Shown in pieces: positions 29,255 to 51,085 of a stretch of 64,000 nucleotides of DNA (the stretch's first letter is position 1; every line of letters starts with the position of its first letter). This DNA comes from Pavona decussata (taxonomy: Eukaryota), in NCBI GenBank assembly GCA_977016875.1, contig CDRNST010000007.1, positions 2,232,001-2,296,000 of the forward strand. The letters run 5' to 3'. The position numbers and the translations under genes were made by a program. The notes under the pieces were generated by a model. That model saw only the letters and a list, made by a program, of their open reading frames with translations, made no database searches and was not told where the DNA came from.

Positions 29255-29453
29255 NNNNNNNNNNNNNNNNNNNNNNNNNNNNNNNNNNNNNNNNNNNNNN
29301 NNNNNNNNNNNNNNNNNNNNNNNNNNNNNNNNNNNNNNNNNNNNNNNNNNNNNNNNNNNNNNNNNNNNNNNNNNNNNNNNNNNNNNNNNNNNNNNNNNNN
29401 NNNNNNNNNNNNNNNNNNNNNNNNNNNNNNNNNNNNNNNNNNNNNNNNNNNNN
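29255..29453. other. Assembly gap (N run)
   Basis: Run of n. Confidence 1.
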
Positions 29454-29745: not shown

Positions 29746-32700
29746 ATGGCTATCAGAGAAACAGCGTTTGTTCTTTGTTTTATTTTGTCACCACTGTTAT
29801 TGGAGGCAACGCAGCTAAACCCTAGAGGTAAACTTATATAACACTCTGATGCACCGCATGCAGAGTTTCTAATTAGTTATTTTCAAATATTATATTAATT
29901 AAATAAATTAATTCACCCAGATGAGTAACTGTGGGTGTGGCCTGCTTCCATGCCAAAATATCAATGTACGTTGTAAATTCAGTATCTCGCATTTAGCCTA
30001 AGTTTAAGTATTGGAATGTTTTTCTTTTCTTTTCTTTTTCTAAATTTTGCGGCGCACAACGTTATCCAACCAATTGCGCAGGCCATTTCGTGAGACTACA
30101 GTACATTCAAGTCGTAATTTCAATGCATAGTCCCAATTCTTTTTTTTTTTTTTTTTTTTTTTTTAATTGCTACTTTGTGTCTCTACTGGTAAATATAACC
30201 GTAACGTGAACAGTACATTTTCAGGTGTAAAAAATTAAACACTGAAAGCCAAGCGCTAGCAATGTTTTTTGTAAATGACTTTACGGAGAAAACTAAGCTC
30301 TGATAAACATTACTTGCTTTTTCCGTCTACATCTGATAAACAGAAACTGAAGCTGCTAACGATTGTCAAAAGCCCCTCGTCTCTGGTGCTAAATTAACTG
30401 CCTCTTCAAGATATGATGATGGTTTAGCTGCCAGCAAAGCCATATTAGGTCAAACATCAGGATCCTGGGCAGCTGGCAAACCCGATGAAAACCAATGGCT
30501 TCAGGTTGATCTACAAGAGGACAACTTCAAAGTAACACGTGTAGAAACCCAAGGAAGAAGCCAAACCGCACAGTGGGTGAAAAAGTACAAATTGCAGTAC
30601 AGCGATGATGGAGAGAACTTCAAGTACTACAAGGAACAAGGACAAACAACTGACAAGGTGATATACTTGTCTATTTGACGTTAATACATATAGATAGGTT
30701 AGCCTGACAGAAGAACTTCTAAGGCCCCATGCAAGGATTTATTGATTTAGACACCCACTGATTTCTCTCGTGTTCAGTTCAGCTCAGTTCAGTTCAGTTT
30801 ATTGTTTTGCCATAAGTTGCATTGTGCAGAAGCATATCTCATTATTTAAACGCTAAATGGCGAGGAAGCCCAAGGGAAGCCACCGGGCTTATAACGAATC
30901 AGCTCCCTCAGTTAAATAATTACGTATAGCTTGTCAAAAGCCCCTCGAGTTAGGGAGAGCCTAATCAAAGAACTTGAATTTCATTGTCATTATTGTTATT
31001 AAATGGAATTTTGTTATTTAGTAATTTAGAGAGTTGGGTTATTTTGTCTGCATGACTAATTAACTTGTCGGGACTGTCATGTTAATCTTATGATTGAAGT
31101 TCTAGCTTATCCTACAGGGGCGGGTTGTTGGGAAGCCGACTAACGCTAATCCACGGTTATATTTTAATCGAGGTTTTTAGCTCGATCATTAAAAATGGTT
31201 TTAAAAGCTAATTTCGAGCTAAAGGTAAAGAAAGGTCTCAGTAAAAACTGAGAACCAAAAATCTTTTGGAAGAATCTTTATCGATTAGCAATTAAACTCC
31301 AGTCAAAGTTTGCGTTAATCCAGTATTAGCTTAATGGAGCTTTGAACAACTGGGCCCAGAATGTCAATCTTATGATTCACGATCTAGGTTATCCGACACA
31401 AATGTTTAGTAGTTCAATAGTAGTTGATGAATTTTGGTATTTTGGTATGTTAACAATTTCTGTGAAACATTTATGCTTGATAATTCTTGCTGACCTTAGC
31501 TTGGAACACCGTTAAAATTTCGTTCCTTAGTGTGTTGTTTTTGAACTGCCGTTCTCTGTAATATTTTCATTGGATACCTGTTATTTTAACGTGTGGTCGT
31601 TAGGTTTATTTGGGTTTTCTTAGTTGAGTGGTAAAGAGGATTATGGAAGTCCTCAAGGTCAGTTTACCCAAACATGTTTACACGTAGGGTATATAATTGT
31701 GAACCTTTGTTCAGTAATAAAGTTTGTTGCTTAGTTGGAGTCGTTGTTGCTTAGTCTGTTGGTTCCTCATAAAGCTTAGAAAAAAGAGCTAAGAAGACTC
31801 TCGGTACCTGTCCGGAAGCAAGTCGCTTATTGAGCATCCAACAATCTAGGAATTACGGGTTCCTCGACTAAAATTAAAAATAACTTGATAATTTTGGAGA
31901 ACTGGAATTTCTAAATAAACTTAATTTGTATGTAAAATAATCTCTAGAATGTTCCTATCTTTCTTCTTCAGGAGTTTGAAGGAAACGCAGACAAGAACAC
32001 CATTGTCTATCATGACCTCAATCCACCAATTTGGGCACGTTACATTCGTTTTCGGCCAACAGAATGGAATTACTGGATAGCAATGAGGGTGGAGCTGTAT
32101 GGTTGCCAAGGTAATACTGAATGCCATAGTTAGAAGGTTCGCTTATTTATTGGGCGTTTCTAAACACTCCTCGGTTTTGAAAAGTCATTTTATGTGCACA
32201 ATGTTTATTACAAGAATTTCGATTTTCAAACCGTTGCAATTTCTTGATTTTCTTCAAAATCTCAAGATCGTCCAAGTTGTCCTAAATATAATCAAAAGAA
32301 ACAAATAAGTACTTTAGTGATACATCATCAAAGGAAAAAAATGAAATGTTGAGCGGTGTTTATTGCAACTTTAAAAAGTTATGAACGCGTTCAAAGACGA
32401 CAGCATGGGCATTTTGTATCACCCCTCCTTTCGGTGTCTTTTAATACTTGGCCGTTTAAACAATAAAATCCGAGAGCTAACATCGAAAAAGTTATGCCTC
32501 GAAGACAGAGTGTGACTTTTCTAGGCAAAGACAGGACTCGAACTTTTTTTTAAACATTTTTTTATTTTTTTGTAAGTGTTTGAGCCCTTCTGGAAATTTG
32601 TACTGAAATGCTTTTACAATCGACCGATTCTTTGTATTCCTAACAGTTTTCGCGAACTTTTGTTTAAAAAAGTTCTTCGCACGGTTCAATAAATTTGCTT

Positions 32701-35700
32701 CAAAATTGACTCTCAATTTTTTCAAATCGCTTCACACGTTTTGCTCACCTTGACGCGTTCGCTTTTCAGATGTTAACAAAGGTTTATCTGAGTGACTTTG
32801 AAATCAATAGCATGAGAGAACACTTTTAAACGTGTTTCGGCCTAAACAAGGCAGCACGCTACCTTGGTGATCAAAGAAGTGGGCGTACCTCTGTTGACTT
32901 TGTTGAAAATTCTGTCGATTCCACAGAATCCTTATCAAGGAGTGTAAATATGCGTAATTCTGTGGTGGTTATCATAGTTTATTAGTTTTCGATTCATTTC
33001 CGTCACATAAAATGGAAAGAGCTAAGAAGATCTGTCGTTTTTTACTCGTGAATGCGTGCATGCGCAATGAACGAGTTATCGTGATCTGGACTTGAATTTC
33101 ACTCGCTCGCTAGCTCGCTCGATCAGATGTAAACTTTTTATTAACTTAATTGGAATTTAATCAAAAACATAAATTATTCATGAGTTACGTATAGTGCATG
33201 AATTCACCATCAAAACCCTCAACAACTTATAAATACAAATCAGAATAACCTTATTTAATGTATAGGGAACAATTTGGCGATCATTTCAGTGTAACAATAG
33301 AGATTTTTCTTTAAATCTCAGCAGGAGCAATAAGGTTTTTCAGTTTTGAAAGAACTGCAGTGTTTCAAATTCAATTAGTGGCAAATTTACCAGCAATTTT
33401 TTTTCACGGCGCATCAGAATAATCTTATTCAATCTGTAGAGAATAATTTGACAATTATTTTAGTACAAGAATGAAGATTTTTCGTTAAATCTGTGCAAAG
33501 TTGTAAGTTTTTTTTTTTTCGTTTTTCCACAAAGTGCGGTTTCCTAAATTCAATTAATGAAGTGTTGGCATGAACTTTTTAGAAAAGAAAACACGCGAAA
33601 ATTTTTTACTCGGCGCATCAAAATAACCTTATTCTGAATCAATATATGGGGAATAAGTTTACAATCATTTTAGTACAAGAACGGTTATTTTTCGTCAAAA
33701 TCGGGGAAAAATATAATTTCTTTTAATTTTCAAGGCAGAGTAGTGTCTTAATTTCAATTACTGAGGTGCCATCTGCGTTCACGAGTTGGCTCACAGGAGC
33801 CCTTGATAGTAGTTGTAGCAGTTTTTATTGGTTATTGGTATAAATTCTGTAGCAAATCATATGCAACGCTGTTGATTTTAATCGATCCTAAATTACGTAT
33901 AGATTTTCAGAAGCCCCTCGTCTCTGGTGCTAAATTAACTGCCTCTTCAAGATATGATGATGGTTTAGCTGCCAGCAAAGCCATATTAGGTCAAACATCA
34001 GGATCCTGGGCAGCTGGCAAACCCGATGAAAACCAATGGCTTCAGGTTGATCTACAAGAGAACAACTTCAAAGTAACACGTGTGGCAACCCAGGGAAGAA
34101 GCCAAACCGTTCAGTGGGTGAAAAAGTACAAATTGCAGTACAGCGATGATGGAGAGAACTTCAAGTACTACAAGGAACAAGGACAAACAACTGACAAGGT
34201 GATATACTTGTCTATTTGACGTTAATACATATAGATAGGTTAGCCGGACAGAAGAACTTCTAAGGCCCCATGCAAGGGTTTATTGATTTAGACACCCACT
34301 GATTTCTCTCGTGTTCAGTTCAGCTCAGTTCAGTTCAGTTTATTGTTTTGCCATAAGTTGCATTGTGCAGAAGCATATCTCATTATTTAAACGCTAAATG
34401 GCGAGGAAGCCCAAGGGAAGCCACCGGGCTTATAACGAATCAGCTCCCTCAGTTAAATAATTACCTATAGATTGTCAAAAGCCCCTCGTGTTAGGGAGAG
34501 CCTAATCAAAGAACTTGAATTTCATTGTCATTATTGTTATTAAATGGAATTTTGTTATTTAGTAATTTAGAGAGTTGGGTTATTTTGTCTGCATGACTAA
34601 TTAACTTGTCGGGACTGTCATGTTAATCTTATGATTGAAGTTCTAGGTTATCCTACAGGGGCGGGTTGTTGAGAACCCGACTAACGCTAATCCACGGTTA
34701 CATTTTAATCGAGGTTTTTAGCTCGATCATTAAAAATGGTTTTAAAAGCTAATTTCGAGCTAAAGGTAAAGAAAGGTCTCAGTAAAAACTGAGAACCAAA
34801 AATCTTTTGGAAGAATCTTTATCGATTAGCAATTAAACTCCAGTCAAAGTTTGCGTTAATCCAGTATTAGCTTAATAGAGCTTTGAACAACTGGGCCCAG
34901 AATGTCAATCTTATGATTCACGATCTAGGTTATCCGACACAAATGTTTAGTAGTTCAATAGTAGTTGATGGATTTTGGTATTTTGGCAGTGTTAACAATT
35001 TCTTTGAAACATTTATGCTTGATAATTCTTGCTGACCTTAGCTTGGAACACCGTTAAAATTCCGTACCTTAGTGTGTTGTTTTTGAACTGCCGTTCTCTG
35101 TAATATTTTCATTGGATACCTGTTATTTTAATGTGTGGTCGTTAGGTTTATTTGGGTTTTCTTAGTTGAGTGGTAAAGAGGATTCTGAAAGTCTCGAGGT
35201 CAATTAACCCAAACATGTTTACACGTAGGGTATATAATTGTGAACCTTTGTTCAGTAATAAAGTTTGTTGCTTAGTTGGAGTCGTTGTTGCTTAGTCTGT
35301 TGGTTCCTCATTAAGCTTAGAAAAAAGAGCTAAGAAGACTCGCGGTACCTGTCCGGAAGCGAGTCGCTTATTGGGCATCCAACAATCTAGGAATTACGGG
35401 TTCCTCGACTAAAATTAAAAATAACTCAATAATTCTGGAGAACTGGAATTTCTAAATAAACTTAATTTGTATGTAAAATAATCTCTAGAATGTTCCTATC
35501 TTTCTTCTTCAGGAGTTTGAAGGAAACGCAGACAAGAACACCATTGTCTATCATGACCTCAACCCACCAATTTGGGCACGTTACATTCGTTTTCGGCCAA
35601 CAGAATGGAATTACTGGATAGCAATGAGGGTGGAGCTGTATGGCTGCCAAGGTAATACTGAATGCCATAGTTAGAAGGTTCGCTTATTTATTGGGCGTTT

Positions 35701-38700
35701 CTAAACACTCCTCGGTTTTGAAAAGTCATTTTATGTGCACAATGTTTATTACAAGAATTTCGATTTTCAAACCGTTGCAATTTCTTGATTTTCTTCAAAA
35801 TCTCAAGATCGTCCAAGTTGTCTTAAATATAATCAAAAGAAACAAATAAGTACTTTAGTGATACATCATCAAAGGAAAAAAATGAAATGTTGAGCGGTAT
35901 TTATTGTAACTTTAAAAAGTTATGAACGCGTTCAAAGACGACAGCATGGGCATTTTGTATCACCCCTCCTTTCGGTGTCTTTTAATACTTGGCCGTTCAA
36001 ACAATAAAATCCGAGAGCTAAAATCGAAAACCTCATGCCTCGAAGACAGAGTGTGACTTTTCTAGGCAAAGACGGGACTCGGACTTTTTTTTTTTTAATT
36101 TTTTTTTTTTTTTGTAAGTGTTTGAGCGCTTCTGGGAAGTTGTACTGAAATGCTTTTCCAATTGACCGATTCTTTGTATTCCTAACAGTTTTCGCGAACT
36201 TTTGTTTAAAAAAGTTCTTCGCACGGGTCAATAAATTTGCTTCAAAATTGACTCTCAATTCTTTCAAATCGCTTCACACGTTTTGCTCACCTTGACGCGT
36301 TCGCTTTTCAGATGTTACCAAAGGTTTATTGAATGACTTTGAAATCAATAGCATGAGAGGACACTTTTTTACGTGTTTCGGCCTAAACAAGGCAGCACGC
36401 TACCTTGGTGATCAAAGAAGTGGGTGTACCTCTGTTGACTTTGTTGAAAATTCTGTCGATTCCACAGAATCCTTATCAAGGAGTGTAAATATGCGTAATT
36501 CTGTGGTGGTTATCATAGTTTATTATTTTTCGGTTCATTTCCGTCACATAACATGGAAAGAGCTAAGAAGCTCTGTCGTTTTTTACTAGTGAATGCGTGC
36601 ATGCGCGATGAACGAGTTATCGTGATCTGGACTTGAATTTCACTCGCTCGCTAGCTCGCTCGATCAGATGTAAACTTTTTATTAACTTAATTGGAGTTTA
36701 ATCAAAAACATAAATTATTCATGAGTTACGTATAGTGCATGAATTCACCGTCAAAACCCTCAACAACTTATAAATACCAATCAGAATAACCTTATTCAAT
36801 GTATAGGGAACAATTTGGCGATCATTTCAGTGTAAGAATAAAGATTTTTCTTTAAATCACAGCAGGAGTAATAAGGTTTTTCAGTTTTGAAAGAACGGCA
36901 GTGTTACAAATTCAATTAGTGGAAAATTGACCAGAAATTTTTTTTTCACTGCGCATCAGAATAATCTTATTCAATCTGTAGAGAATAATTCGACAATTAC
37001 TTTAGTGCAAGAATGGAGATTTTTCGTTAAATTTGTGCAAAGTTGTAAGGTTTTTTTTCGTTTTTTCACAAAGTGCGGTTTCCTCAATTCAATTAGTGAA
37101 GTGTTGGCATGAACTTTAAAAAAAAAAAGACACGCGAAAATTTTTTACTCGGCGCATCAAAATAATCTTATTCTGAATCAATCAGTATAGGGAATAAGTT
37201 TACAATAATTTTAGTACAAGAATGGTTATTTTTCGTCAAAATCGGGCAAAGATATAATTTCTTTTAATTTTCAAGGTAGAGTAGTGTCTTAATTTCAATT
37301 ACTGAGGTGCCATCTACGTTCACGAGTTGGCTCACAGGAGCCCTTGATAGTAGTTGTAGCAGTTTTCATTGGTTATTGGTATAAATTCTTTAGCATCCCA
37401 TATGCAACGTTGTTGATTTTAATCGATCCTAAATTACGTATAGATTGTCAGAAGCCCCTCGTCTCTGATGCTGAATTAACTGCCTCTTCAAGATATGATG
37501 ATGGTTTAGCTGCCAGCAAAGCCATATTAGGTCAAACATCAGGATCCTGGGCAGCTGGCAAACCCGATGAAAACCAATGGCTTCAGGTTGATCTACAAGA
37601 GAACAACTTCAAAGTAACACGTGTGGCAACCCAGGGAAGAAGCCAAACCGCTCAGTGGGTGAAAAAGTACAAATTGCAGTACAGCGATGATGGAGAGAAC
37701 TTCAAGTACTACAAGGAACAAGGACAAACAACTGACAAGGTGATATACTTGTCTATTTGACGTTAATACATATAGATAGGTTAGCCTGACAGAAGAACTT
37801 CTAAGGCCCCGTGCAAGGATTTATTGATTTAGACACCCACTGATTTCTCTCGTGTTCAGTTCAGCTCAGTTCAGTTCAGTTTATTGTTTTGCCATAAGTT
37901 GCATTGTACAGAAGCATGTCTCATTATTTAAACGCTAAATGGCGAGGAAGCCCAAGGGAAGCCACCGGGCTTATAACGAATCAGCTCCCTCAGTTAAATA
38001 ATTACCTATAGATTGTCAAAAGCCCCTCGTGTTAGGGAGAGCCTAATCAAAGAACTTGAATTTCATTGTCATTATTGTTATTAAATGGAATTTTGTTATT
38101 TAGTAATTTAGAGAGTTGGGTTATTTTGTCTGCATGACTAATTAACTTGTCGGGACTGTCATGTTAATCTTATGATTGAAGTTCTAGGTTATCCTACAGG
38201 GGCAGGTTGTTGAGAAGCCGACTAACGCTAATCCACGGTTACATTTTAATCGAGGTTTTTAGCTCGATCATTAAAAATGGTTTTAAAAGCTAATTTCGAG
38301 CTAAAGGTAAAGAAAGGTCTCAGTAAAAGCTGAGAACCAAAAATCTTTTGGAAGAATCTTTATCGATTAGCAATTAAACTCCAGTCAAAGTTTGCGTTAA
38401 TCCAGGATTAGCTTAATGGAGCTTTGAACAACTGGGCCCAGAATGTCAATCTTATGATTCAAGATCTAGGTTATCCGACACAAATGTTTAGTAGTTCAAT
38501 AGTAGTTGATAGATTTTGGTATTTTGTCATGTTAACAATTTCTGTGAAACATTTATGCTTGATAATTCTTGCTGACCTTAGCTTGGAACACCGTTAAAAT
38601 TCCGTACCTTAGTGTGTTGTTTTTGAACTGCCGTTCTCTGCAATATTTTCATTGGATACCTGTTATTTTAACGTGTGGTCGTTAGGTTCATTTGGGTTTT

Positions 38701-41700
38701 CTTAGTTGAGTGGGAAAGAGGATTCTGAAAGTCTCGAGGTCAATTAACCCAAACATGTTTACACGTAGGGTATATAATTGTGAACCTTTGTTCAGTAATA
38801 AAGTTTGTTGCTTAGTTGGAGTCGTTGTTGCTTAGTCTGTTGGTTCCTCATACAGCTTAGAAAAAAGAGCTAAGAAGACTCTCGGTACCTGTCCGGAAGC
38901 GAGTCGCTTATTGGGCATCCAACATTATTCTAGGAATTACGGGTTCCTCCACCAAAATTAAAAATAATTCGATAATTTTGGAGAACTGGAATTTCTAAAT
39001 AAACTTAATTTGTATGTAAAATAATCTCTAGAATGTTCCTATCTTTCTTATTCAGGAGTTTGAAGGAAACGCAGACAAGAACACCATTGTATATCATGAC
39101 CTCCACCTACCAATTTGGGCACGTTACATTCGTTTTCGGCCAACAGAATGGAATTACTGGATAGCAATGAGGGTGGAGCTGTATGGCTGCCAAGGTAATA
39201 CTGAATGCCATAGTTAGAAGGTTCGCTTATTTATTGGGCGTTTCTAAACACTCCTCGGTTTTGAAAAGTCATTTTATGTGCACAATGTTTATTACAAGAA
39301 TTTCGATTCTCAAACCATTGCAATTTCTTGATTTTCTTCAAAATCTCAAGATCGTCCAAGTTGTCTTAAATATAATCAAAAGAAACAAATAAGTACTTTA
39401 GTGATAAATCATCAAACGAAAAAAAATGAAATGTTAAGCGGTATTTATTGTAACTTTAAAAAGTTATGAACGCGTTCAAAGACGACAGCATGGGCATTTT
39501 GTATCACCCCTCCTTTCGGTGTCTTTTAATACTTGGCCGTTTAAACAATAAAATCGGAGACCTAACATCGAAAACCTTATGCCTCAAGACAGAGTGTGAC
39601 TTTTCTAGGCAAAGACGGGACTCGGAATTATTATTATTATTTTTTTAAATTTATTTTCTTGTAAGTGTTTGAGCCCTTCTGGGAAGTTGTACTGAAATGC
39701 TTTTCCAATTGACCGTTTCTTTGTATTCCTAACAGTTTTCGCGAACTCTTGTTTTAAAAAAAAGTGCTTCGGATGGGTCAATAAATTGGCTTCTTAAACT
39801 CATTAATAATTCATCAAGAGAAAACACAGAAAATCACTACCGTGACCGTCGTTTGGATATGTGATCCTAATTACCATAAAATTTTGCCAACTTTAGGCTT
39901 GATTTTTTCCAAGAGTTATTGATCATTTGAGAAGCCATATCCAACATTCGAAAGTGTGTTTTATCAGATATCCAAATACCTCGAAGTGGTTTAAAAAAAC
40001 TCGGCTGCGCCTCGTTTTTTCAACCTACTTCTTAGTGTTTGGATATCTGATGAAACACTCTTCCTCGTGTTTGATATATTACTTCAAAATTGACTCCCAA
40101 TTCTTTCAAATCGCTTTATACGTTTTGCTCAACTTGAAGCGTTCGCTTTTAAGACGTTAACAAAGTTTATCTGAATGACTTTGAAATCACTAGCATGAGA
40201 GGACATTTTTTTTACGTGTTTCGGCCTAAACAAGGCAGCACGCTACCTTGGTGATCAAAGAAGTGGGCGTACCCTTGTTGACTGTGTTGAAAATTCATTC
40301 GATTCCACAGAACCCTTATCAAGGAGTGTAAATATGCGTAATTCTGTGGTGGTTATCATAGTTTATTATTTTTCGATTCATTTCCGTCACATAACATGGA
40401 AAGAGCTAAGAAGATCTGTCGTTTTTTACTCGTGAATGCGCGCATGCGCAATGAACGAGTTATCGTGATCTAGACTTGAATTTCACTCGCTCGCTAGCTC
40501 GCTCGATCAGATGTAAACTATATATTAATTTCATCGGAATTTAATCAAAAACATAAATTATTCATGAGTTACGTGTAGTACATGAATTCACCATCAAAAC
40601 CCTCAACAACTTATAAATACAAATCAGAATAACCTTATTCAATGTATAGGGAACAATTTGGCGATCATTTCAATGTAAGAATAGAGATTTTTCTTTAAAT
40701 CTCAGCAGGAGTAATAAGGTTTTTCAGTTTTGAAAGAACTGCAGTGTTTCATATTCAATTAGTGGCAAATTTACCAGAAATTTTTTTCGCGTCGCATCAG
40801 AATAATCTTATTCAATCTGTAGAGAATAATTTGACAATTATTTTAGTGCAAGAATGGAGATTTACCGTTAAATCTGTGCAAAGTTGTGAGTTTTTTTTTT
40901 TTTTTTTCGTTTTTCCACAAAGTGCGGTTTCCTAAAATAAATTAGTGAAGTGTTGGCATGAACTTTAAAAAAAAAAGCACGCGAAAATTTTTTACTCTGC
41001 GCATCAAAATAACTTTATTCTAAATCAATATATAGAGAATAAGTTTACAATCATTTTAGTACAAGAATGGTTATTTTTCGTCAAAATCGACCAAAGATAT
41101 AATTTCTTTTAATTTTCAAGGCAGAGTAGTGTCTTAATTTCAATTACTGAGGTGCCATCTGCGTTCACGAGTTGGCTCACAGGAGCCCTTGATAGTAGTT
41201 GTAGCAGTTTTTATTGGTTATTGGTATAAATTCTGTAGCATCCCATATGCAACGCTGTTGATTTTAATCGATCCTAAATTACGTATAGATTGTCAGAAGC
41301 CCCTTGTCTCTGGTGCTAAATTAACTGCCTCTTCAAGATATGATGATGGTTTAGCTGCCAGCAAAGCCACATTAGGTCAAACATCAGGATCCTGGGCAGC
41401 TGGCAAACCCGATGAAAACCAATGGCTTCAGGTTGATCTACAAGAGAACAACTTCAAAGTAACACGTGTGGCAACCCAGGGAAGAAGCCAAACCGCTCAG
41501 TGGGTGAAAAAGTACAAATTGCAGTACAGCGATGATGGAGAGAACTTCAAGTACTACAAGGAACAAGGACAGACAACTGACAAGGTGATATACTTGTCTA
41601 TTTGACGTTAATACATATAGATAGGTTAGCCTGACAGAAGAACTTCTAAGGCCCCGTGCAAGGATTTATTGATTTAGACACCCACTGATTTCTCTCGTGT

Positions 41701-44700
41701 TAGGAAGAGCCTAATCGGAGAACTTGAATTTCATCGTCATTATTCTTATCAAATGGAATTTTGTTATTTAGAATTTAGAGAGTTGGGTATTTTTGCCTGC
41801 ATGACTTAATGACTTGTGACTGTCATGTTAATCTTATGATTCAAGGACTAGGTTATGCGACACAAATGTTAGTATGTTAATGGTAGTTGATGGATTATTT
41901 TGGTATGTTAACAATTTCTGTGAAACAGCCATGCTTGATAATTGTTGCTGACCTTAGCTTGGAACACCGTTAAAATTCTGTTCCTTAGTGTGTTGTTTTT
42001 GAACTGCCGTTCTCTGCATTTTTTTCATTGGATACCTGTTATTTTAATGTGTGGTCCTTAGGTTCATTTGGGTTTTCTTAGTTGAGTGGTAAAGAGGATT
42101 CTGAAAGTCCTCAAGGTCAGTTTACCCAAACATGTTTACACGTACGGTATATAATTGTGAACCTTTGTTCAGTAATAAAGTTTGTTGCTTAGTTGGAGTC
42201 GTTGTTGTTTAGCCTGTTGGTTCCTCATAAAGCTTAGAAAAAAGAGCTAAGAAGACTCTCGGTACCTGTCCGGAAGCGAGTCCCTTATTGGGCATCCAAC
42301 ATTATTTTAAGAATTACGGGTTCATCGACTAAAATTAAAAATAACTCGATAATTTTGGAGAACTGGAATTTCTGAATAAACTTAATTTGTATGTAAAATA
42401 GTCTCTAGAAGAGGATGACAGAAGTTACTGCCGAAACATGTTTTATAGACTCAAAAGCTTTTTCGCTTTCCTTAAAATCAGTATAATGTTCCTATCTTTC
42501 TTATTCAGGAGTTTGAAGGAAACGCAGACAAGAACACCATTGTCTATCATGACCTCAATCCACCAATTTGGGCACGTTACATTCGTTTTCGGCCAACAGA
42601 ATGGAATTACTGGATAGCAATGAGGGTGGAGTTGTATGGTTGCCAAGGTAATACTGAATGCCATAGTTAGAAGGTTTGCTTATTTATTGGGCGTTTCTAA
42701 ACACTCCTCGTTTTGAAAAGTCATTTTGTTTGCACAATTTCTATTTTTCAAACCGTTGCAGTTTCTTGATTTTCTTCAAAACCTCATAAGACCATCCAAA
42801 TTGTCCTAAATGTAATCAAAACAAGCAAATAAGTACTTAAGTAATACATCATCAAACAAAACGTCATATGTTTAGTGGTGTTTATTGTAACTTTGAGAAG
42901 TTATGAACGCGTTCAAAGACGACAGCATGGACATTTTGTATCACCCCTCCCTTCCGTGTCTTTTAATACTTGGCCCTTTAAACAATAAAATCCGAGAACT
43001 AACATCGAAAAAGTTATGCCTCGAAGACAGAGTGTGACTTTTCTAGGCAAAGACGGGACTCGGGCTTTTATTATTTTTATTTTTTTTGTAAGTGTTTGAG
43101 CCCTTCTCGGAATTTGTACTGAAATGCTTTTCCAATTGACCGATTCTTTGTATTCCTAACAGTTTTCGCGAACTTTTGTTTAAAAAAATTCTTCGCACGG
43201 GTCAATAACTTCGCTTCAAATTGACTCCCAATTCTTTCAAATCGCTTTATACCTGTTTCTCACCTTGAAGCGTTCGCTTTTCAGGCGTGAAAAAATGTTT
43301 ATCTGAATGAATTTTTCATTTAGGAAAGCGTTTTTGTTTGTTTTCCTCCATGTTTTTTTAACTCAGCAATCGTACTCAAACAAACACATGTCCTCGCGAG
43401 CGGATCAATTTCGCAGCCCATCTGACGCGAGGATCAAATTTCAGCGTAGTTGTTCAAGTTTGTTTTTTGGGCAATTCTTAGTCCGCAACTAGTGTACTTT
43501 ATTTTGTACTTAAAATTCGAACTATTCTTTCCCAAAGGAGTGTTTTTGTTGTTGTTGTAGTTGTTGTTGTTGCGGTCGCCATCCGTCGGAGGAAATTGCT
43601 TGTCCCTAAGCTCAGTGTATGGCTTAGTTACGTTTAGAATGTAGGGCGTACTAAAGCCCTTTTCCACTACATACCTATAGACCTTGTAAGGGACTACCTC
43701 TCCCGAGATCAAAAGTAACGATCAAACACTCACCACTCGGAGCCTTTAACCAACCATTGTCTTCACCGGAGTCTTACGAAATAATAAATGGAAGACTAAT
43801 GAACATTGACCTTTCAGTTAAAGAATTATTAATAAAAAGAATTGCCTCATTAAACAGTCCTTGTACCTACAGCTATCAACCGTGACTCTATTTGCATCAT
43901 TTATTAACACTCACCTCATAAAAAAAAATCCATGACTTCTCACAATTATCATTTTCTGTACAGAAATCCTTTTTGCAACAGAAAAAAAATGCAGAATAAG
44001 AGACCCAAATGCAACGGCAAAATTTATATAATATATCCTCTGCATTCACGAGTTGCTCATAAGAGCCTTTGGTTATCAGTTAAGTTTAAGTATTTGAAAA
44101 ATGCAGGCAGTGCTGCTTACTTAATCGTTGTTTTTTCATTTTATCACTACAGAATCCACCAAAAAGCCACCACCAGACTACAAAGGTATGAGAAACACCT
44201 AAAGGCAAATAAAATTATGTAAATGAATTTTTTTCTTATACATAGGCAAGTAAAAACTAACGATATAAGGTTCCGACGTTTCGGCGACGTCATGACGCCA
44301 TTCTCAAGGAATGAATAATATAAGCGAGTTCAACAGAGTAAGATCTTAGATTAACATAATGAGTAATTTAAATAAATACTTTGGCGCGGATCGAATCTGA
44401 TTATACATTCAAGCGTGGTCTTAATTGTTTGATGTACAGCATTTCGTGAATTAAACAATCAAATTTGTTCCTGCATTTTTTCAGTACTTTGAAACAGCTA
44501 AGGAGGTCTTCAGGGACTGCGCTCGCGTGATCGTTATCATAATGTTTCCGCACAGAGGATGAAGTGCTGTTGTGGCCAATGACGCGCGCATGCAGATGAC
44601 CACGAGTATAACCAACATAGCTACCTCCCTCGCACAGGTTACATTGCAAACAATAAACTACACATTGTTGGTTAACTAGCTGTGGTTTTGGGCTCCAATT

Positions 44701-47700
44701 CTTGGAGGTCTTGGCCAATTTTGCGACTGACAAATACGGGTTGGATTGTAGTTTGGAGCTTAAGACTAAGGTCTTTCAACTGAGTCTTAACAATGTCAGC
44801 GGAAACTTGATCCTTAAAAGGAATGATCACACGGGCCACGTCACTTTCCATTACTGGCGAGGCCTGCGGTGTCTGCTGGTCAGCAACTCTCGAGTTGATA
44901 AAGGTGTTAATGGTGGAGTTGATGAGGTGTAGAGGGTACTTTAGGCGCGAAAACACAGACTTCAAGCGTTCACACTCGTCCGAAAAATAACTCCATGACG
45001 AGGATAACCGGTCCAGCATAGTTGTTAACAAGATGCCTGCTATACTGGCATTACGCGTGATGCTGGGGCTGATTCATTTATTCCAACTGTATGCTTCGCC
45101 GATTGATAAAACTATCCTTGCTAATGGAATAGTTTGAGTCACGACGATCGCGTTACGTTGTTTCCCTTGTGTTACGCTACTCAGGGTTTCAAGGGAAATT
45201 GCGGGAATTCCATTGCGATAACGTAAGCTTCTCAATGACCTCTTTTCAGTCTCGCGTCGTGGTCTAAGACTGTCAAACAAAGCACGATTCCTTCGCCAGG
45301 AATTTACCAATTTCCACCGTTTTAAATGTTGGGTGCTTCTTAGAAGTTATTCTTTCGATTTGCCCCTTCAAAATGGTGAAATTTCCGTTTGAAAACGGCA
45401 CACTTGAGTCCAGAACATGTTAACAATATGGCGCCAAATTTAATCTGTTTTTAATAAATAGATCAAATGATGCGTTGACGTCACACAGATAGGGGTGAGT
45501 GGGTCCCCTCCCTCGCGATGTAAGTGACAAGAATGGATTTTGCTTGGCCTGCTTCTGTTGAAGACAATCAGAACAATACACCCCGAGTAGGAGAGGGGTG
45601 AGTTTAATGAATAAATTAATGTACAGATTTGTAGCTACGAGGAAGAAAAAAAAAAAAAAAAAAGAAATCGACCCGTTTTTAGACACGGTATGCCCCTTCA
45701 GGGCATCCCGCGTAATAAGCTTTGTTTGTACCGGTTGTCTACGTGACTTTGGTAATGGAGAAGTAAGCCGGTATTAGCAGGTTTCACGTAAACCCTGGTC
45801 CCGATTTGAGGCGCTCGATTTAAGAGCTGGGTTCCGAGAAAGGGGAGCATCCCATCCTTTTCGATTTCCATGGTAAACTTGACAGCAGGGTGGGCGTGGT
45901 TGAGGGTATCAAGGAAATCCGTAGCTGCGGTGATATCGGGCATAACTGTGAGGGTATCATCGACAAATCTGCGGTAATAAGGAGGCAACTTGCCAACCAT
46001 CTTTAGTTCTTCTTCCAACGATGACATAAACACGTTAGCTAGTAACGGACCAAGGGGGGAACCCATAGCCACTCCATCGATTTGCTCATAGAGGTAGCCA
46101 TTACATTGGAACAGCTGGTCCTTCGTAGCCACACTCAGGAGATCAACGAGGTCCTCCTTTGATATGTTCAAGTCATATGTAGAGTTAAACCAGTTGTCCT
46201 TGAAGGCTTTCTCAGCGAGGATCTCGATGGTTCCATTCAATGGCACGTTGGTAAACAAAGACGACACATCATATGATACCATCTAAGATCTTACTCTGTT
46301 GAACTCGCTTATTGAACTCATTCCTTGAGAATGGCGTCATGACGTCGCCGAAACGTCGGAACCTTACATCGTTAGTTTTTACTTGCCTATGTATATCGAA
46401 AGCACTATTAATTATAATTTTTTTCTTGAATTGGAAATTTGCTGATCTATTAATAAATGTGATTCCGTCGCATTAGTTTGGGCAATTTAACTTTACAGCT
46501 GAGAAGCGAAATGCTAAACAAACTCATGATATCATGATATCCATATCTACGATACTAGATCACTAGATCGGTGCTCTACCAAGTGAGCTGAGCATTTTGT
46601 GAGTTTGTAATTTATATTAGCCTATCACAAAGCAGAGATGGGAGTTGCAATACCATATATATGAACTTCAGATGAAAGAATTAATAAATGAGCTAGACAC
46701 CTTCGTTGTTAATATGTATCAGTTAAAGATGATGGCGTATGGAACGATTTTTTAAAGCAACATTGTTAGTATTGTGTTACTGAACATAGCGCGCGGACAC
46801 CTTTTAACGAAGAAATTCCTTTCCGGCAAAACATTTCAAATTTTATCTGTCTTCTTAAAAGTTAAAACATGTTGTCCGCGCGTTATGTTGCGATCAAATG
46901 TGCCGTGTAAAATCATCTAAATATTTCATGCCTTGTACGGTTTACCGATACAAAGGTGGGGATACACAGCTAACATAACAACATCCTGGGCTTCAACAGT
47001 ATGCGTAGTATGGGTGGAAAATGTAAAAGAATTTAGCAGTTAGATACGCAATTGGGTTTTGAAAATCCATTCTTTGATTCCACCAAGGGTTATGTAAAGA
47101 GTCAAGAGATTTGTGGAGTTTGAATGGACCAATAATAAAGAGCCTTGACAAATTGGAAAACACATGATTGGGCCACAAGGTGTCTTTTTCATTTGTATCG
47201 TTAAAATGTTTCACGAGAGTGGCATGGATGCAATTGAGTAAGGAAAAACAAGCCGCGGTTATCAATAATGGCCGAAAACTCCCATTTTTCTTTGTCCCAT
47301 CGAAAGTTCAACCCCCCCCCCCCCCCCCCCAACACTACCAACAACCATGGTCCCATGGTCGTGACATTTTATCCTAAGTGTCAAGTTATTTGTATCGATT
47401 CCATAAATTGTCAAAATGCTCTCGGACGCTCTCTTGGTTATCACTCTGGACCAGGTTGCTCGAAAGCTGATTAACGCTAATCTACGATTAAAAGTTAACC
47501 GAGGTTTTCATCTCGCTCATTATTGTGGTTTTTGAAAGCTCGTTTTAAGCTAATGTTAAAGACAAGTCTAAATCAAAAATTGAGGACAAAAAACTTTGGA
47601 AGAATCTTTAATGATTAGTCATTAAATTGGAATCAACGTTCACGTTAAAATAATCCAGGATTACGGTTTAATCGGGCTTTGAACAATTGAGCCCTGATCA

Positions 47701-49587
47701 GTAGTTGGCAGATCTACTGATTACTTTTATTCTCGACTTTCCAACCATCAGATTTTCTCAGATTATTACAGTCGAACCAGGTCAAGCGTACCCCCCTAGA
47801 TTCTATTAATGAAACTATTATTTGAAAATTGAACCCGTTAGTCGTTTCAAGTATTCAAATCAAAATTAGATTTCTGATTGGATTATACGAACAATACATG
47901 AAACCAGAAAACCAGAAAGCCCGCGGGAAAAACCCTTCTTAATATATTCAGAGCGGCAATTCTTGACTTATATAGCAATGGATTTTCCAAAAAGCAGATT
48001 TCTCTTCATTTACAGCAGTCAACGCGTACTGTCAGAAAAAAAATTCGCCATTTTAAACCGGGCACGGTGGTCCTGTCGTGTAAGTTTAAACTCACTAATG
48101 ATCACTAAATGGACATTTTACGTTTGTACACTTGCGTTTTTCTTCCGTTAATTATTCAAAAACAAAAATGAAAAAGGACTGGAAGCGTTTTATCATAATA
48201 AACGATTCTCTTTTTGAGGTATATGCTAATTTATTTGGCGAAAAGTATGCGAACTCACAGTGAAAGATGTTCATTTCAGTTGACCTTCGACAATGGCAGC
48301 ACATGTGTTGCGCTATTCGTCGCGGTATAATGGACAGTCTGGTGAAATAATAATACATACCAAACTTTTTCATGCTACAAGGTGGGTAATGCTAGCTATA
48401 CATGAAAGATAAATTGGAATTTTTCAACCCGACTCATTTGCAAGCGCTTGACTTTGTGCTCTTGCCATGACCAAATTTGCATAACGAATTATGTGAATGT
48501 GTCAACAACACGCAGGAACAGTTTTAACGATCGAGCTGTTTCAATTATGTACTGTCGTTTGAATTTTACAGGCTACTGCTTTTACTGTTAGCGCGGATCT
48601 ATGTTATACGAATTTTAATTTGAACATCGATCCGCGCTAACAATGAATAAATGAATGCATTCTTTGAAACGACTAATCGGTTCAATTTTCAAATAATCGA
48701 CCCATTAATAGAGTCTAGGGGGGTACGCTTGACCTGGTTCGACTGTAACAGATTATTTAACGCGCGAGTTTTTGCACTTGTTAATTTCACAGTAATACCA
48801 TCAAATTACATGGCTCACATCAAAGCTTTCGACAAGAACAATGATGGATATATCACGGCTGAAGAGATGCAACAACGACTAAAAGAACTTAGAAAAGACG
48901 TCCCACTGAGAAGTTTGGAGCTTACTGTTGAACAGAAAGACGAAAACGGTGACAACAAGCTTGATTACGGAGGTAAGAGGAAAACTTGTTAAAAATTCAA
49001 CCTTAACTCTTTGCCATGAATTATAATTCTGTAATTATAGACTGAAAAATTGCAGAATTAGACCCCAAAATAGTCCGTTGGTCATTCGTACAAACACAAG
49101 CAGTCTTCAAATGATGAACAGTCTGGGGCAAGGGAGAAAATAAAGAGAGAGTAACACTGGGGAGAGAAGAGGGAGGAAGAGGCTCCCGTCCGCGAAAATC
49201 CGGCATTTTCCCTTTTTGTGCCCCGCATGTTTAAGCTTTTGGCGATTCGAATCAACCTCAGTGAATTTCAAGAGAAAAAGACAAAACGATTGTTTGGCAA
49301 TCTATTAAAGGATTGTCTTCAACTACAGTTCAGCAAAATTGTATTGCCTTTGTACCTTTTGAACTCTTTGAAATGTCCTAAGTTTTGTTGACTTGTATCA
49401 ACAGCAGCAAACAATTTTGTCTAAAATTGTGGGAGTACCGCACTTGTTCGTAAAAACCAATTGCCCCATCGTTTCCACTTACTTTAGGTATTACATAAAA
49501 CTGAATGCTTAAGTTTGTAACAGCTGATCATATCTAATTAAGATCTCGTATTTCGTTTCAGAATTCTACCAGTTTTTGAAAGGCTGA
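29746..49587 (+). CDS. Secreted protein: signal peptide + 4x F5/8 type C (discoidin) domains + Pro-rich linker + C-terminal EF-hand pair, predicted 692 aa
   Basis: Exons 29746-29827 ([21 protein letters not shown]..), 30344-30657, 31972-32110, 33903-34198, 35513-35651, 37444-37739, 39056-39194, 41289-41584, 42509-42647, 44153-44185 ([11 protein letters not shown]), 48793-48972, 49562-49587. All GT-AG, phases match, 2079 nt with no stop seen. Discoidin motifs [42 protein letters not shown] loops [12 protein letters not shown] and [18 protein letters not shown] at ~49761. Confidence 0.75.
30361..43310 (+). repeat. Four intragenic tandem duplications of a ~3.54-kb two-exon discoidin module
   Basis: Equivalent donors at 30657, 34198, 37739, 41584 (spacing 3541, 3541, 3845); introns are nearly identical. 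Confidence 0.95.
31115..31358. mobile_element. MITE (gggcccagttgttc family); copies at 7817-8053, 14240-14990, 34657-34899, 38197-38440, 47447-47695, 63556-63800
   Basis: caggggcgggttgttg..aagccgactaacgctaatcc ... gctttgaacaactgggcccag; absent from discoidin unit 4. Confidence 0.8.
44238..46415 (-). mobile_element. 5'-truncated Penelope-like retroelement (RT + GIY-YIG) with inverted pseudo-LTRs and 12-bp TSD, intronic
   Basis: RT 45698-46282 ([31 protein letters not shown]); GIY-YIG 44401-44733 ([16 protein letters not shown]). Inverted repeats 44238-44352 / 46281-46394; TSD aatttttttctt at 44226-44237 and 46416-46427. Interrupted by an unrelated ~680-bp insert (45031-45713). Confidence 0.92.
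46321..46361 (+). ncRNA. Minimal/atypical type I hammerhead-like motif in the PLE pseudo-LTR (second copy 44271-44311, - strand)
   Basis: ttcc-UUGAGAAU-ggcg(tcatgacgt)cgcc-GAAACGUC-ggaa: stem I ttcc/ggaa, stem II, vestigial helix III with palindromic ACGU. Confidence 0.55.
47769..48745. mobile_element. Non-autonomous Tc1/mariner-pogo-type DNA transposon, ~85-bp TIRs, TA TSD
   Basis: ta|cagtcgaaccaggtcaagcgtacccccctaga ... tctaggggggtacgcttgacctggttcgactg|ta; no transposase ORF. Confidence 0.9.
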
Positions 49588-51085
49588 ATCATACCACAGC
49601 TTAAACAAGACTGTAAACAAATTCAGTGAGGGTAATTTGCATTGCGCGGTTGACGTGAATTACTAGTGATATAACCGCCGATGTGGTTATTTGCTCATTT
49701 TTAGTTTTTAGCCAAAGGGTCTCTGGAGCTAGGGTAACTATCTTTACTTACGGTCGTGGAAATAAAGCTACTTGCTGCATTGCATTGTCGTTGTATAAAT
49801 ATACTGTCAATCCATTATATCCTCCATTTTGTATTCACTCCACAAATTGAGAAGTGGAGGCCCACGCGTGCCGTATGACTTGTTAGCGCTCTCTATCTCT
49901 TGTCTCCTTGAATTCCTTATATACTTGTTAACTGACCTTAGCCGGGTGCATTGAGTCTCACATCAGATTATCGTTCGGTGTCCGTACGAATGAGCACCGC
50001 CATTTTGAATAATCATCAAGTGGCCGTGAGATTTTGGGAGAGCTGGAGACGCGAAGTCCAGTCTCTAGTTATTCGGAGATTCGTAGACTCTTCCTCTTGT
50101 ATGTGGGGTACATTTCACTAGAGTTACCAATGGGTTCCTAACGTCCCTTAGTTCAGACCTCTTGCCGTTGAATATGCATAACCTGTATGCCATAATGACC
50201 GTCTCACAAAGCAATGTACCTTGTTTGAAGATTTCTAATTGTTGAGTTTAGGGTTCCCTGCGTGAGCCCTCTGCGAAAGTGCGCTAAGAAATTCCCAGGC
50301 GTGAGGTAAATGCTAAGAAAAACAAAAAAAAAAACGCGACCCTATGAAAATCAGTCTGAATAATTCAATAGCTTAAAATTATTAGTTATTTCAACTCAAG
50401 GGGTCATCTTGTTTGTTTCTGTTTTATGCCTTAACATGGTAAGCTAAATCGAAATAAATTGTGCAAAACCGTACTGCTCGCTGCAGTTAAACTTACAGCA
50501 AAGTTCTTTGTACACATAGCATAGCAAACAGAAGCCATTGAATAGATTCTCTCGTTTAATGTTACGAAATGATAGTTAAGATTAATATGAAGTGGACTGA
50601 AAAAATACTAAAAATGCCCCTCTTCCGTTTGAAAATCGTTATTTCAACTTAACAACAACAATGACTAGTCTGCCAACAGCAATTTTGCATCTTTAATTGT
50701 CAGTTATGTTCTGCATTTTCCTATTCATCATAAAATGCCTAAATAAAAGGGGTTTTTTATGGGATGATTTAATTGCAGTGGGAAACGACAAAAATATTAT
50801 TGTATATTAAACTCGGGAGTTAGGACGTTCGTTAGGCTGAGAGGTTTGAAAGCTGCAATGAATACAACTATCAAGAGAAAACAAAGCAGTTTAAGCCCCC
50901 ATTGAAACGAAAACATAAAACACTGTTACAAGTTTGCACAAAAACATCATTATGGATGAATTATTAGCATAATAAGACAACAGACACAAGGCTTCCAAAA
51001 CGTATAATTAAAAAATTAAAATTTTAGAGAACTGGGCGCTATTAAACCCCAGGTCGCCAAAACACAGATGTGACCGTAGGCTGAA

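Follow-up and report, generated by a model that had tools for sequence, protein, structure and literature searches.

Do the four discoidin (F5/8C) domains and the pair of EF-hands that follow one another on a single strand of a Pavona decussata contig belong to one secreted protein? The question concerns a window of 64,000 nucleotides (nt), the whole stretch of DNA that was analysed (positions 2,232,001 to 2,296,000 of contig CDRNST010000007.1, GenBank assembly GCA_977016875.1); coordinates below are counted from its first nucleotide. We consider it fairly probable that a single gene occupies the locus and that it belongs to a coral family of secreted discoidin-EF-hand proteins built from phase 1-1 modules. 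The gene model, referred to below as the window gene, comprises twelve exons within positions 29746-49587:

29746-29827, + strand: exon 1, start codon and signal peptide, donor in phase 1.
30344-30657 and 31972-32110, + strand: discoidin unit 1, exons A and B (Pfam PF00754, splice sites).
33903-34198 and 35513-35651, + strand: discoidin unit 2, exons A and B (splice sites, repeat match).
37444-37739 and 39056-39194, + strand: discoidin unit 3, exons A and B (splice sites, repeat match).
41289-41584 and 42509-42647, + strand: discoidin unit 4, exons A and B, donor in phase 1.
44153-44185, + strand: Pro-rich linker mini-exon of 33 nt (11 residues), phase 1-1, canonical sites.
48793-48972, + strand: EF exon of 180 nt, phase 1-1, first EF loop and most of the second.
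49562-49587, + strand: last exon of 26 nt, which completes Glu12 of the second EF loop and continues with FYQFLKG and TGA.

The exons named in the original prediction are all there; their splice sites are canonical (AG/GT) and their phases mutually consistent. The proposed reading frame through discoidin and EF-hand parts is likewise real, and all 12 exons are open. Their summed length corresponds to 692 codons plus a stop in the predicted product. The introns that separate modules in the discoidin-EF family are all in phase 1, which makes each module phase 1-1. The single exception to phase 1 is a phase-0 intron within every discoidin unit, so that exon A runs from phase 1 to 0 and exon B from phase 0 to 1. 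In P. decussata, the transcript would be spliced 42647>44153>48793. An AATAAA follows the last exon at 49761, and a run of N (29255-29453) lies ~290 bp upstream of the start codon. Similarity and domain searches were done exon by exon rather than with the joined 692-residue model.

Each discoidin unit contains one F5/8C domain, and the units follow each other with a period of ~3.54-3.85 kb. PF00754 (cut-off 28.2 bits) matches both exon A (77.7 bits, E-value 1.1e-21) and exon B (38 bits, 2.1e-9), and the two exons jointly span profile positions 2-127. Identity between the units is 94-98% along most of the sequence and extends to the introns, so they are recent duplicates. In the F5/8C domain, a disulfide between an N-terminal-side Cys and a C-terminal Cys closes the barrel. 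This pair (DCQ...YGC) is kept in units 1, 3 and 4, whereas in unit 2 it is broken (DFQ): Phe (TTT, 33905-33907) stands in place of the first conserved Cys, which is present in the other three units and in all relatives. The closing disulfide of unit 2 would therefore be lost. Genome-wide, at least 150 discoidin exons were scored among 630 candidates. Elsewhere in the same genome, contig C250 carries very long F5/8C exon-A-like tandem arrays (at ~450-503, 573-585, 693-711 and 808-830 kb) with a period of ~1.1-1.23 kb.

The EF exon is recognised by two Pfam profiles, EF-hand_1 (PF00036; 32.5 bits, 4.8e-8, cut-off 25.4) and EF-hand_7 (PF13499; 30.8 bits, 3.9e-7, cut-off 30). Both loops have the canonical 12-residue pattern (acidic or polar residues at 1, 3 and 5, a hydrophobic one at 8, Glu at 12), with Asn instead of Gly at position 6 of loop 2. 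The Glu at position 12 of loop 2 is created only by splicing to the last exon. The EF tail can be aligned with the C-lobes of calmodulin and troponin C.

Related coral loci were reached through a protein search with the EF exon, which returned unspliced open reading frame (ORF) fragments and, through them, their genomic loci. The relatives are L026 (~95.5% identical to the window), S3 (~89%; a set of 1-kb Logan contigs), S4 (L031; ~85-89%) and S2 (L027, L028 and L030; ~76-79% in the EF intron). The discoidin exons and the same truncated EF exon lie on one strand in the L026, S4 and S2 assemblies. The signal exon is also recognisable (93% identity in L026, 89% in S4 and 74% in S2-b), and the last exon is 100% identical in L026 and matches S2 at 23 of 26 positions. 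The gene of S4 is intact within 11 kb: it has the signal exon, discoidin units D1, D2 and D3, the EF exon and the last exon, all with canonical splice sites. D1 and D2 are of the window type, while D3 is divergent (it begins CQNALGMENGG...), and its exon B lies ~740 bp upstream of the EF exon. S2 shows the same order, with extra units and a linker exon in addition. The discoidin exons are under purifying selection, the ratio of nonsynonymous to synonymous substitution rates (dN/dS) being 0.11-0.30 in comparisons with S4 and S2. Since the discoidin-EF linkage is common to L026, S4 and S2, we are not dealing with a recent local chimera; the combination is older than the linkage that the three assemblies have in common. 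The original prediction had proposed a chimera built by exon shuffling inside an EF-hand gene cluster. Its discoidin-EF frame and its phase 1-1 modules stand, but recent assembly at this locus does not.

A side observation concerns L042, an S2 contig, which at ~39-60 kb carries a second, partial copy of the locus, ~105 kb upstream of the full discoidin-EF gene. This copy consists of an orthologue of gene B (one of the neighbouring EF-hand genes described below), followed by a signal exon and a single discoidin unit whose exon B is degenerate.

The architecture itself is observed in the mRNA of a relative. P0185 is a protein of 317 residues encoded by a 1317-nt contig with untranslated ends (Joint Genome Institute (JGI) sample 3300008030, contig Ga0099821_1429824, locus L043). 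It falls in the same 90% cluster as a fragment matched by the EF exon and represents a more distant cnidarian relative. A signal peptide comes first, followed by a single F5/8C domain (2.5e-29), the linker LEVSTTGETPQKTTPST and a complete EF module closed by the spliced last exon. As one spliced contig encodes all these parts, the combination of discoidin, linker and EF-hand within a single mRNA is a genuine arrangement in the gene family. Like the window gene, P0185 has a signal peptide, an F5/8C domain split at the same intron, a Ser/Thr/Pro-rich linker and a short last exon that completes the final loop; its exon junctions, the A|B junction included, coincide with those predicted for the window. 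In the P. decussata genome, its discoidin part is matched best by the window's four units (65-68% for exon A, 67-71% for exon B, at most 55% elsewhere). In a tree of exon A (99 columns, moderate support), its domain groups with window-type units, apart from D3. The two proteins differ in that P0185 has one discoidin domain instead of four and a full EF module instead of its second half only. They are ~65-70% identical in the discoidin part and ~41% in the EF part. A single-sequence AlphaFold model of P0185 had a mean predicted local distance difference test score (pLDDT) of 38 and was not used. Another JGI contig encodes P0050 (132 residues), in which the EF exons are spliced together but still followed by the last intron (...NYYGKRYKLTQNPL), and which lacks a discoidin part; it is a partly processed form of the P0185 gene or of a close paralogue.

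The linker exon deserves separate consideration, as short exons are easily found. The linker interval contains 230 stop-free phase 1-1 AG..GT segments of 15-120 nt, only 2 of which have a good polypyrimidine tract and donor. By itself, the linker mini-exon is thus no better than chance, and it is conservation that rescues the call. The exon is single copy in the genome and identical in L026. In S2, its homologue keeps both splice sites and shows an in-frame length change from 33 to 21 nt; the alignment score is 86, compared with a mean of 48.6 and a maximum of 58 for shuffled sequences. In S4, no linker exon was found, the alignment score there being at noise level. The phase-1 chain proposed originally, from the last discoidin exon through the 33-nt Pro-rich exon to two EF exons, agrees with the predicted splice sites and phases. 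The other well-signalled phase 1-1 mini-exon candidate (47307-47360) sits on a poly-C tract just upstream of the D3 scar. This scar and two insertions mark the long intron between linker and EF exon:

44237-46416, - strand: truncated Penelope-like retroelement with reverse transcriptase and GIY-YIG ORFs, an intronic insertion.
47389-47435, + strand: D3 deletion scar, with an 18-nt remnant of exon A (CQNALG), a mutated acceptor AG and a breakpoint at 47426/47435.
47768-48746, + strand: insertion of a dispersed repeat, 47 bp before the acceptor of the EF exon.

The retroelement (Pfam RVT_1, 1.6e-8; GIY-YIG, 0.0035) is absent from L026, and the dispersed repeat is absent from L026, S3 and S4. Leaving out both insertions, the intron measures ~1.4 kb. 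The repeat carries a conserved short ORF with dozens of matches (77-94% identity) in coral assemblies. The ORF at 48651-48794 was considered as the EF exon's own start and rejected, as it is part of this repeat and absent from relatives. Between 44185 and 48793, no convincing or conserved alternative signal or first exon was found, the donors being poor. This agrees with the earlier statement that no separate signal exon was found for the EF exons.

The same intron tells what was lost from the gene. What corresponds to S4 positions 6946-9628 is absent from the window, where 47426 and 47435 flank the gap, and L026 has the same scar. Since 18 nt of D3 exon A survive at this clean scar, D3 formerly stood downstream of the linker and upstream of the EF exon. 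Losing a phase 1-1 module such as D3 preserves the frame from linker to EF exon. Window-type discoidin units number four in the window and two in L026. On these grounds, the history may be outlined as follows. The ancestor would have encoded a signal peptide and two to three discoidin units, then, optionally, a Ser/Thr/Pro linker, and after it D3 and the EF-hand pair with its 26-nt last exon. An in-frame deletion would then have removed D3 in the window lineage, the other unit type would have been tandemly amplified to four copies, and two transposons would have inserted into the long last-but-one intron.

The EF part of the gene has kin on the same strand:

Two EF exons just before the window and last exon 250-275, + strand: gene Z (EF homology).
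6972, 8141-8380 and 9281-9480, + strand: gene A, signal exon and EF exons.
13876, 16114-16344, 17175-17411 and 18143-18168, + strand: gene B, signal exon and EF exons.

The EF exon of the window gene is 52% identical to gene Z, 43-44% to gene B (E-value 3e-11) and, in a partial match, 40% to gene A. A whole-genome search with this exon returned three matches only, namely the exon itself, Z and B. Judged by the homology E-values, the resemblance is beyond chance. The final EF loop is split at an identical intron position in Z, B and the window gene, and each of the three has a 26-nt last exon. The EF exons had been said to match the C-terminal half of a neighbour, and they do so in sequence (Z 52%, B 43%), in intron position and in the length of the final exon. 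However, compared with its counterpart in Z and B, the window EF exon starts ~19 codons further on and uses another acceptor, and no homologue of the family's first EF exon was found between 44185 and 48793. In terms of sequence and intron position, the tail corresponds to a shortened copy of the EF3-EF4 exon of the family, together with the 26-nt last exon. Genes Z, A and B are like the window gene in their EF3-EF4 exon homology, phase-1 introns and intron inside the last loop. They differ from it by an extra first EF exon and, in the case of A and B, by a signal exon of their own. No discoidin exons were found within reach of any of the three.

For gene A, a 26-nt last exon was not found; its second EF exon has an in-frame TAA at the third codon and diverges after ...GHHYERF. 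Gene A is probably a pseudogene copy of a secreted EF-hand gene. In its EF part, P0185 is matched best in the genome by genes B (58%) and Z (56%). The signal peptide of P0185 is similar to those of A and B and not to that of the window gene, which suggests that A and B are discoidin-less relatives. They look like such relatives of the family rather than donors of the EF exons.

Is the tail still coding? The EF exon is 91.7% identical to that of S2, compared with 75.9% for the intron, and between S4 and S2 its dN/dS of 0.24 likewise favours a coding exon. It is open in four of the five genomes (window, S2, S3 and S4) and frameshifted in L026. As it is only 52% identical to its nearest paralogue and yet open in these four genomes, it was kept coding long after duplication. 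The codon split by its acceptor, G+T(A/A/T/T/G), specifies Val in all five genomes; this constancy fits a coding junction, because all exon Bs and the linker exon end in G.

Protein word searches with the EF exon (at 32-103 and 62-197 residues) and with exon A gave unspliced genomic ORFs only. Four runs guessed to be RNA (8-13% of sampled words) were compared over 43650-49649 only. Their contigs cover transposon parts of this interval, with none on the linker, EF or last exon; the result neither shows nor excludes expression of the gene. Kin of the Penelope-like retroelement are abundant in contigs of these runs (95-99% identity). The S3 Logan contigs were considered as a 1-kb transcript and rejected: they are colinear with the genome, intron included, have repeat ends and are most likely DNA.

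A number of observations weigh against the preferred reading. According to the main rival, the EF exons are a relic in P. decussata, a discoidin-only protein is made by read-through after a unit or the linker, and the tail has been drifting since D3 was lost. The original prediction saw no terminal exon for the discoidin part, but there may be one: in each exon B the frame stays open past the donor as far as GNTECHS and a stop, so that read-through could terminate the protein there, and for unit 4 the stop lies at 42665-42667, with AATAAA at 42984. These elements, however, belong to the repeat unit and hence are not specific to the last unit. L026, which has the D3 deletion in common with the window, carries 4 additional nt in its first EF loop, which bring the frame to a premature end, and this frameshifted ORF occurs on two contigs. 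In the window, by contrast, splice sites, both EF loops and the last exon are all intact. On the branch leading to the window and L026, the EF exon accumulated 5 replacement and 1-2 silent changes, as opposed to ~5 replaced codons and 6-7 silent changes on the other branches combined; dN/dS is 0.55-0.58 in comparisons with the window and 0.24 between S4 and S2. These values suggest relaxed constraint on the EF exon after the loss of D3, and the tail may be decaying in the window lineage, although the numbers are too small for a test and cannot separate relaxed from maintained constraint. Moreover, the five replacements are conservative and lie away from the calcium-coordinating positions. The intron to be spliced has grown to 4.6 kb with two transposons inside, the EF exons have no contigs in the four RNA-like runs, and a spliced ORF containing the EF exon was found neither at 32-197 residues nor among 1.84 billion representatives. 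In S2, exon A of D3 has an apparent 1-nt frameshift, which may be an assembly error. Taken together, we regard a relic tail as rather unlikely.

Two other explanations appear far less plausible. The EF exons might form a small independent gene that starts just upstream of 48793 and encodes a cytosolic two-EF-hand protein of ~62 residues (MAHIKAFD...). The in-frame Met, five codons into the exon, is kept in 5/5 genomes, ~100 nt upstream and ~85-110 nt downstream of the coding part can be aligned between species, and the ~1 kb S3 contigs span exactly this block. Those contigs, however, are DNA-like, for the reasons given above. The acceptor AG and its pyrimidine tract are conserved, and changes between acceptor and Met are silent or conservative in the phase-1 frame. 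In addition, all family members with a known mRNA or gene structure have a signal peptide, and the protein collection searched contained no such short spliced ORF, which leaves this explanation highly improbable. Alternatively, the whole locus might be silent or a pseudogene, its near-identical units being neutral tandem duplications. No transcript-derived discoidin ORF was found at 55-175 residues, where all matches were unspliced genomic ORFs; unit 2 is without its first conserved Cys, and unit copy number differs (4 versus 2) between close relatives. Nevertheless, the splice sites of the twelve open exons are intact, the discoidin exons have the low dN/dS values reported above, and the interval of the read comparison lies outside them. 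A silent locus is thus very unlikely. The reading we prefer remains that of one secreted discoidin-EF-hand gene, probably a derived member of a family so far undescribed in corals.

The predicted product of this gene is a multivalent F5/8C protein with a short Pro-rich hinge and a calmodulin-C-lobe-like EF-hand pair. Through its discoidin domains it would bind with avidity to a repeated ligand, for instance a glycan, a phospholipid or a matrix resembling collagen. With calcium at extracellular levels, the EF pair would be loaded and would serve as a structural or pairing module, similar to that of SPARC, and not as a switch. Roles in mucus, immunity, symbiosis or the skeleton are speculation. 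Tentatively, and with considerable doubt, we propose that the locus belongs to an undescribed coral family combining discoidin and EF-hand, in which phase 1-1 modules turn over fast (1 to 4 or more units, D3 loss, EF halving, discoidin-less copies, sister taxa that differ) and whose tail would make ligand binding or oligomerisation calcium-dependent where tissue meets skeleton or host meets symbiont.

Each of the two domains is familiar, but for their combination we found neither a name nor a paper in the literature searched. The protein collection gave no source name for P0185 or its relatives, and the nearest large ESM Atlas clusters are discoidin-only. As general context, PMC2291459 lists discoidin expressed sequence tags among candidate recognition receptors of corals, and PMC10236652 has tandem duplication in coral genomes as its subject. 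Provided that the protein is produced, it is a candidate for a multivalent lectin linked to calcium, in an animal for which the handling of calcium, mucus, and the recognition of microbes and symbionts are central. Independently of function, the locus illustrates cleanly how genes evolve at the level of modules: a whole domain was deleted in frame and left a visible scar, the units were amplified to four as opposed to two in a close relative, and the tail is intact or frameshifted depending on the genome.

Among known systems, lactadherin/MFG-E8, EDIL3, retinoschisin and the C domains of factor V/VIII belong to the same F5/8C fold family as the units of the window. The P0185 domain matches factor V/VIII C2, neuropilin b1/b2, lactadherin, CASPR2 and retinoschisin with E-values from 1e-37 to 1e-17. 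Secreted discoidin proteins often have tandem C domains that bind membranes or glycans. Their partner modules (EGF, A domains, the RS1 domain) differ from those of the window gene, and we know of no EF-hand in lactadherin/MFG-E8, EDIL3, retinoschisin or factor V/VIII. EF-hands do occur in the secretory pathway and matrix, where calcium is high and their role is structural, as in the EC domain of SPARC/BM-40 and in CREC proteins. The window gene, unlike SPARC/BM-40, has no follistatin or Kazal part. Its EF exon gave no match to SPARC_Ca_bdg (PF10591), for which the neighbour exons scored 15.1 and 13.7 bits and P0185 19 (cut-off 22). CREC proteins (calumenin, reticulocalbin) have six EF-hands and a C-terminal HDEL-like retention signal, whereas the window gene has two EF-hands and ends in ...EFYQFLKG, without an HDEL-type end. 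By sequence, its tail is nearest not to SPARC or CREC but to the C-lobe of calmodulin and troponin C.

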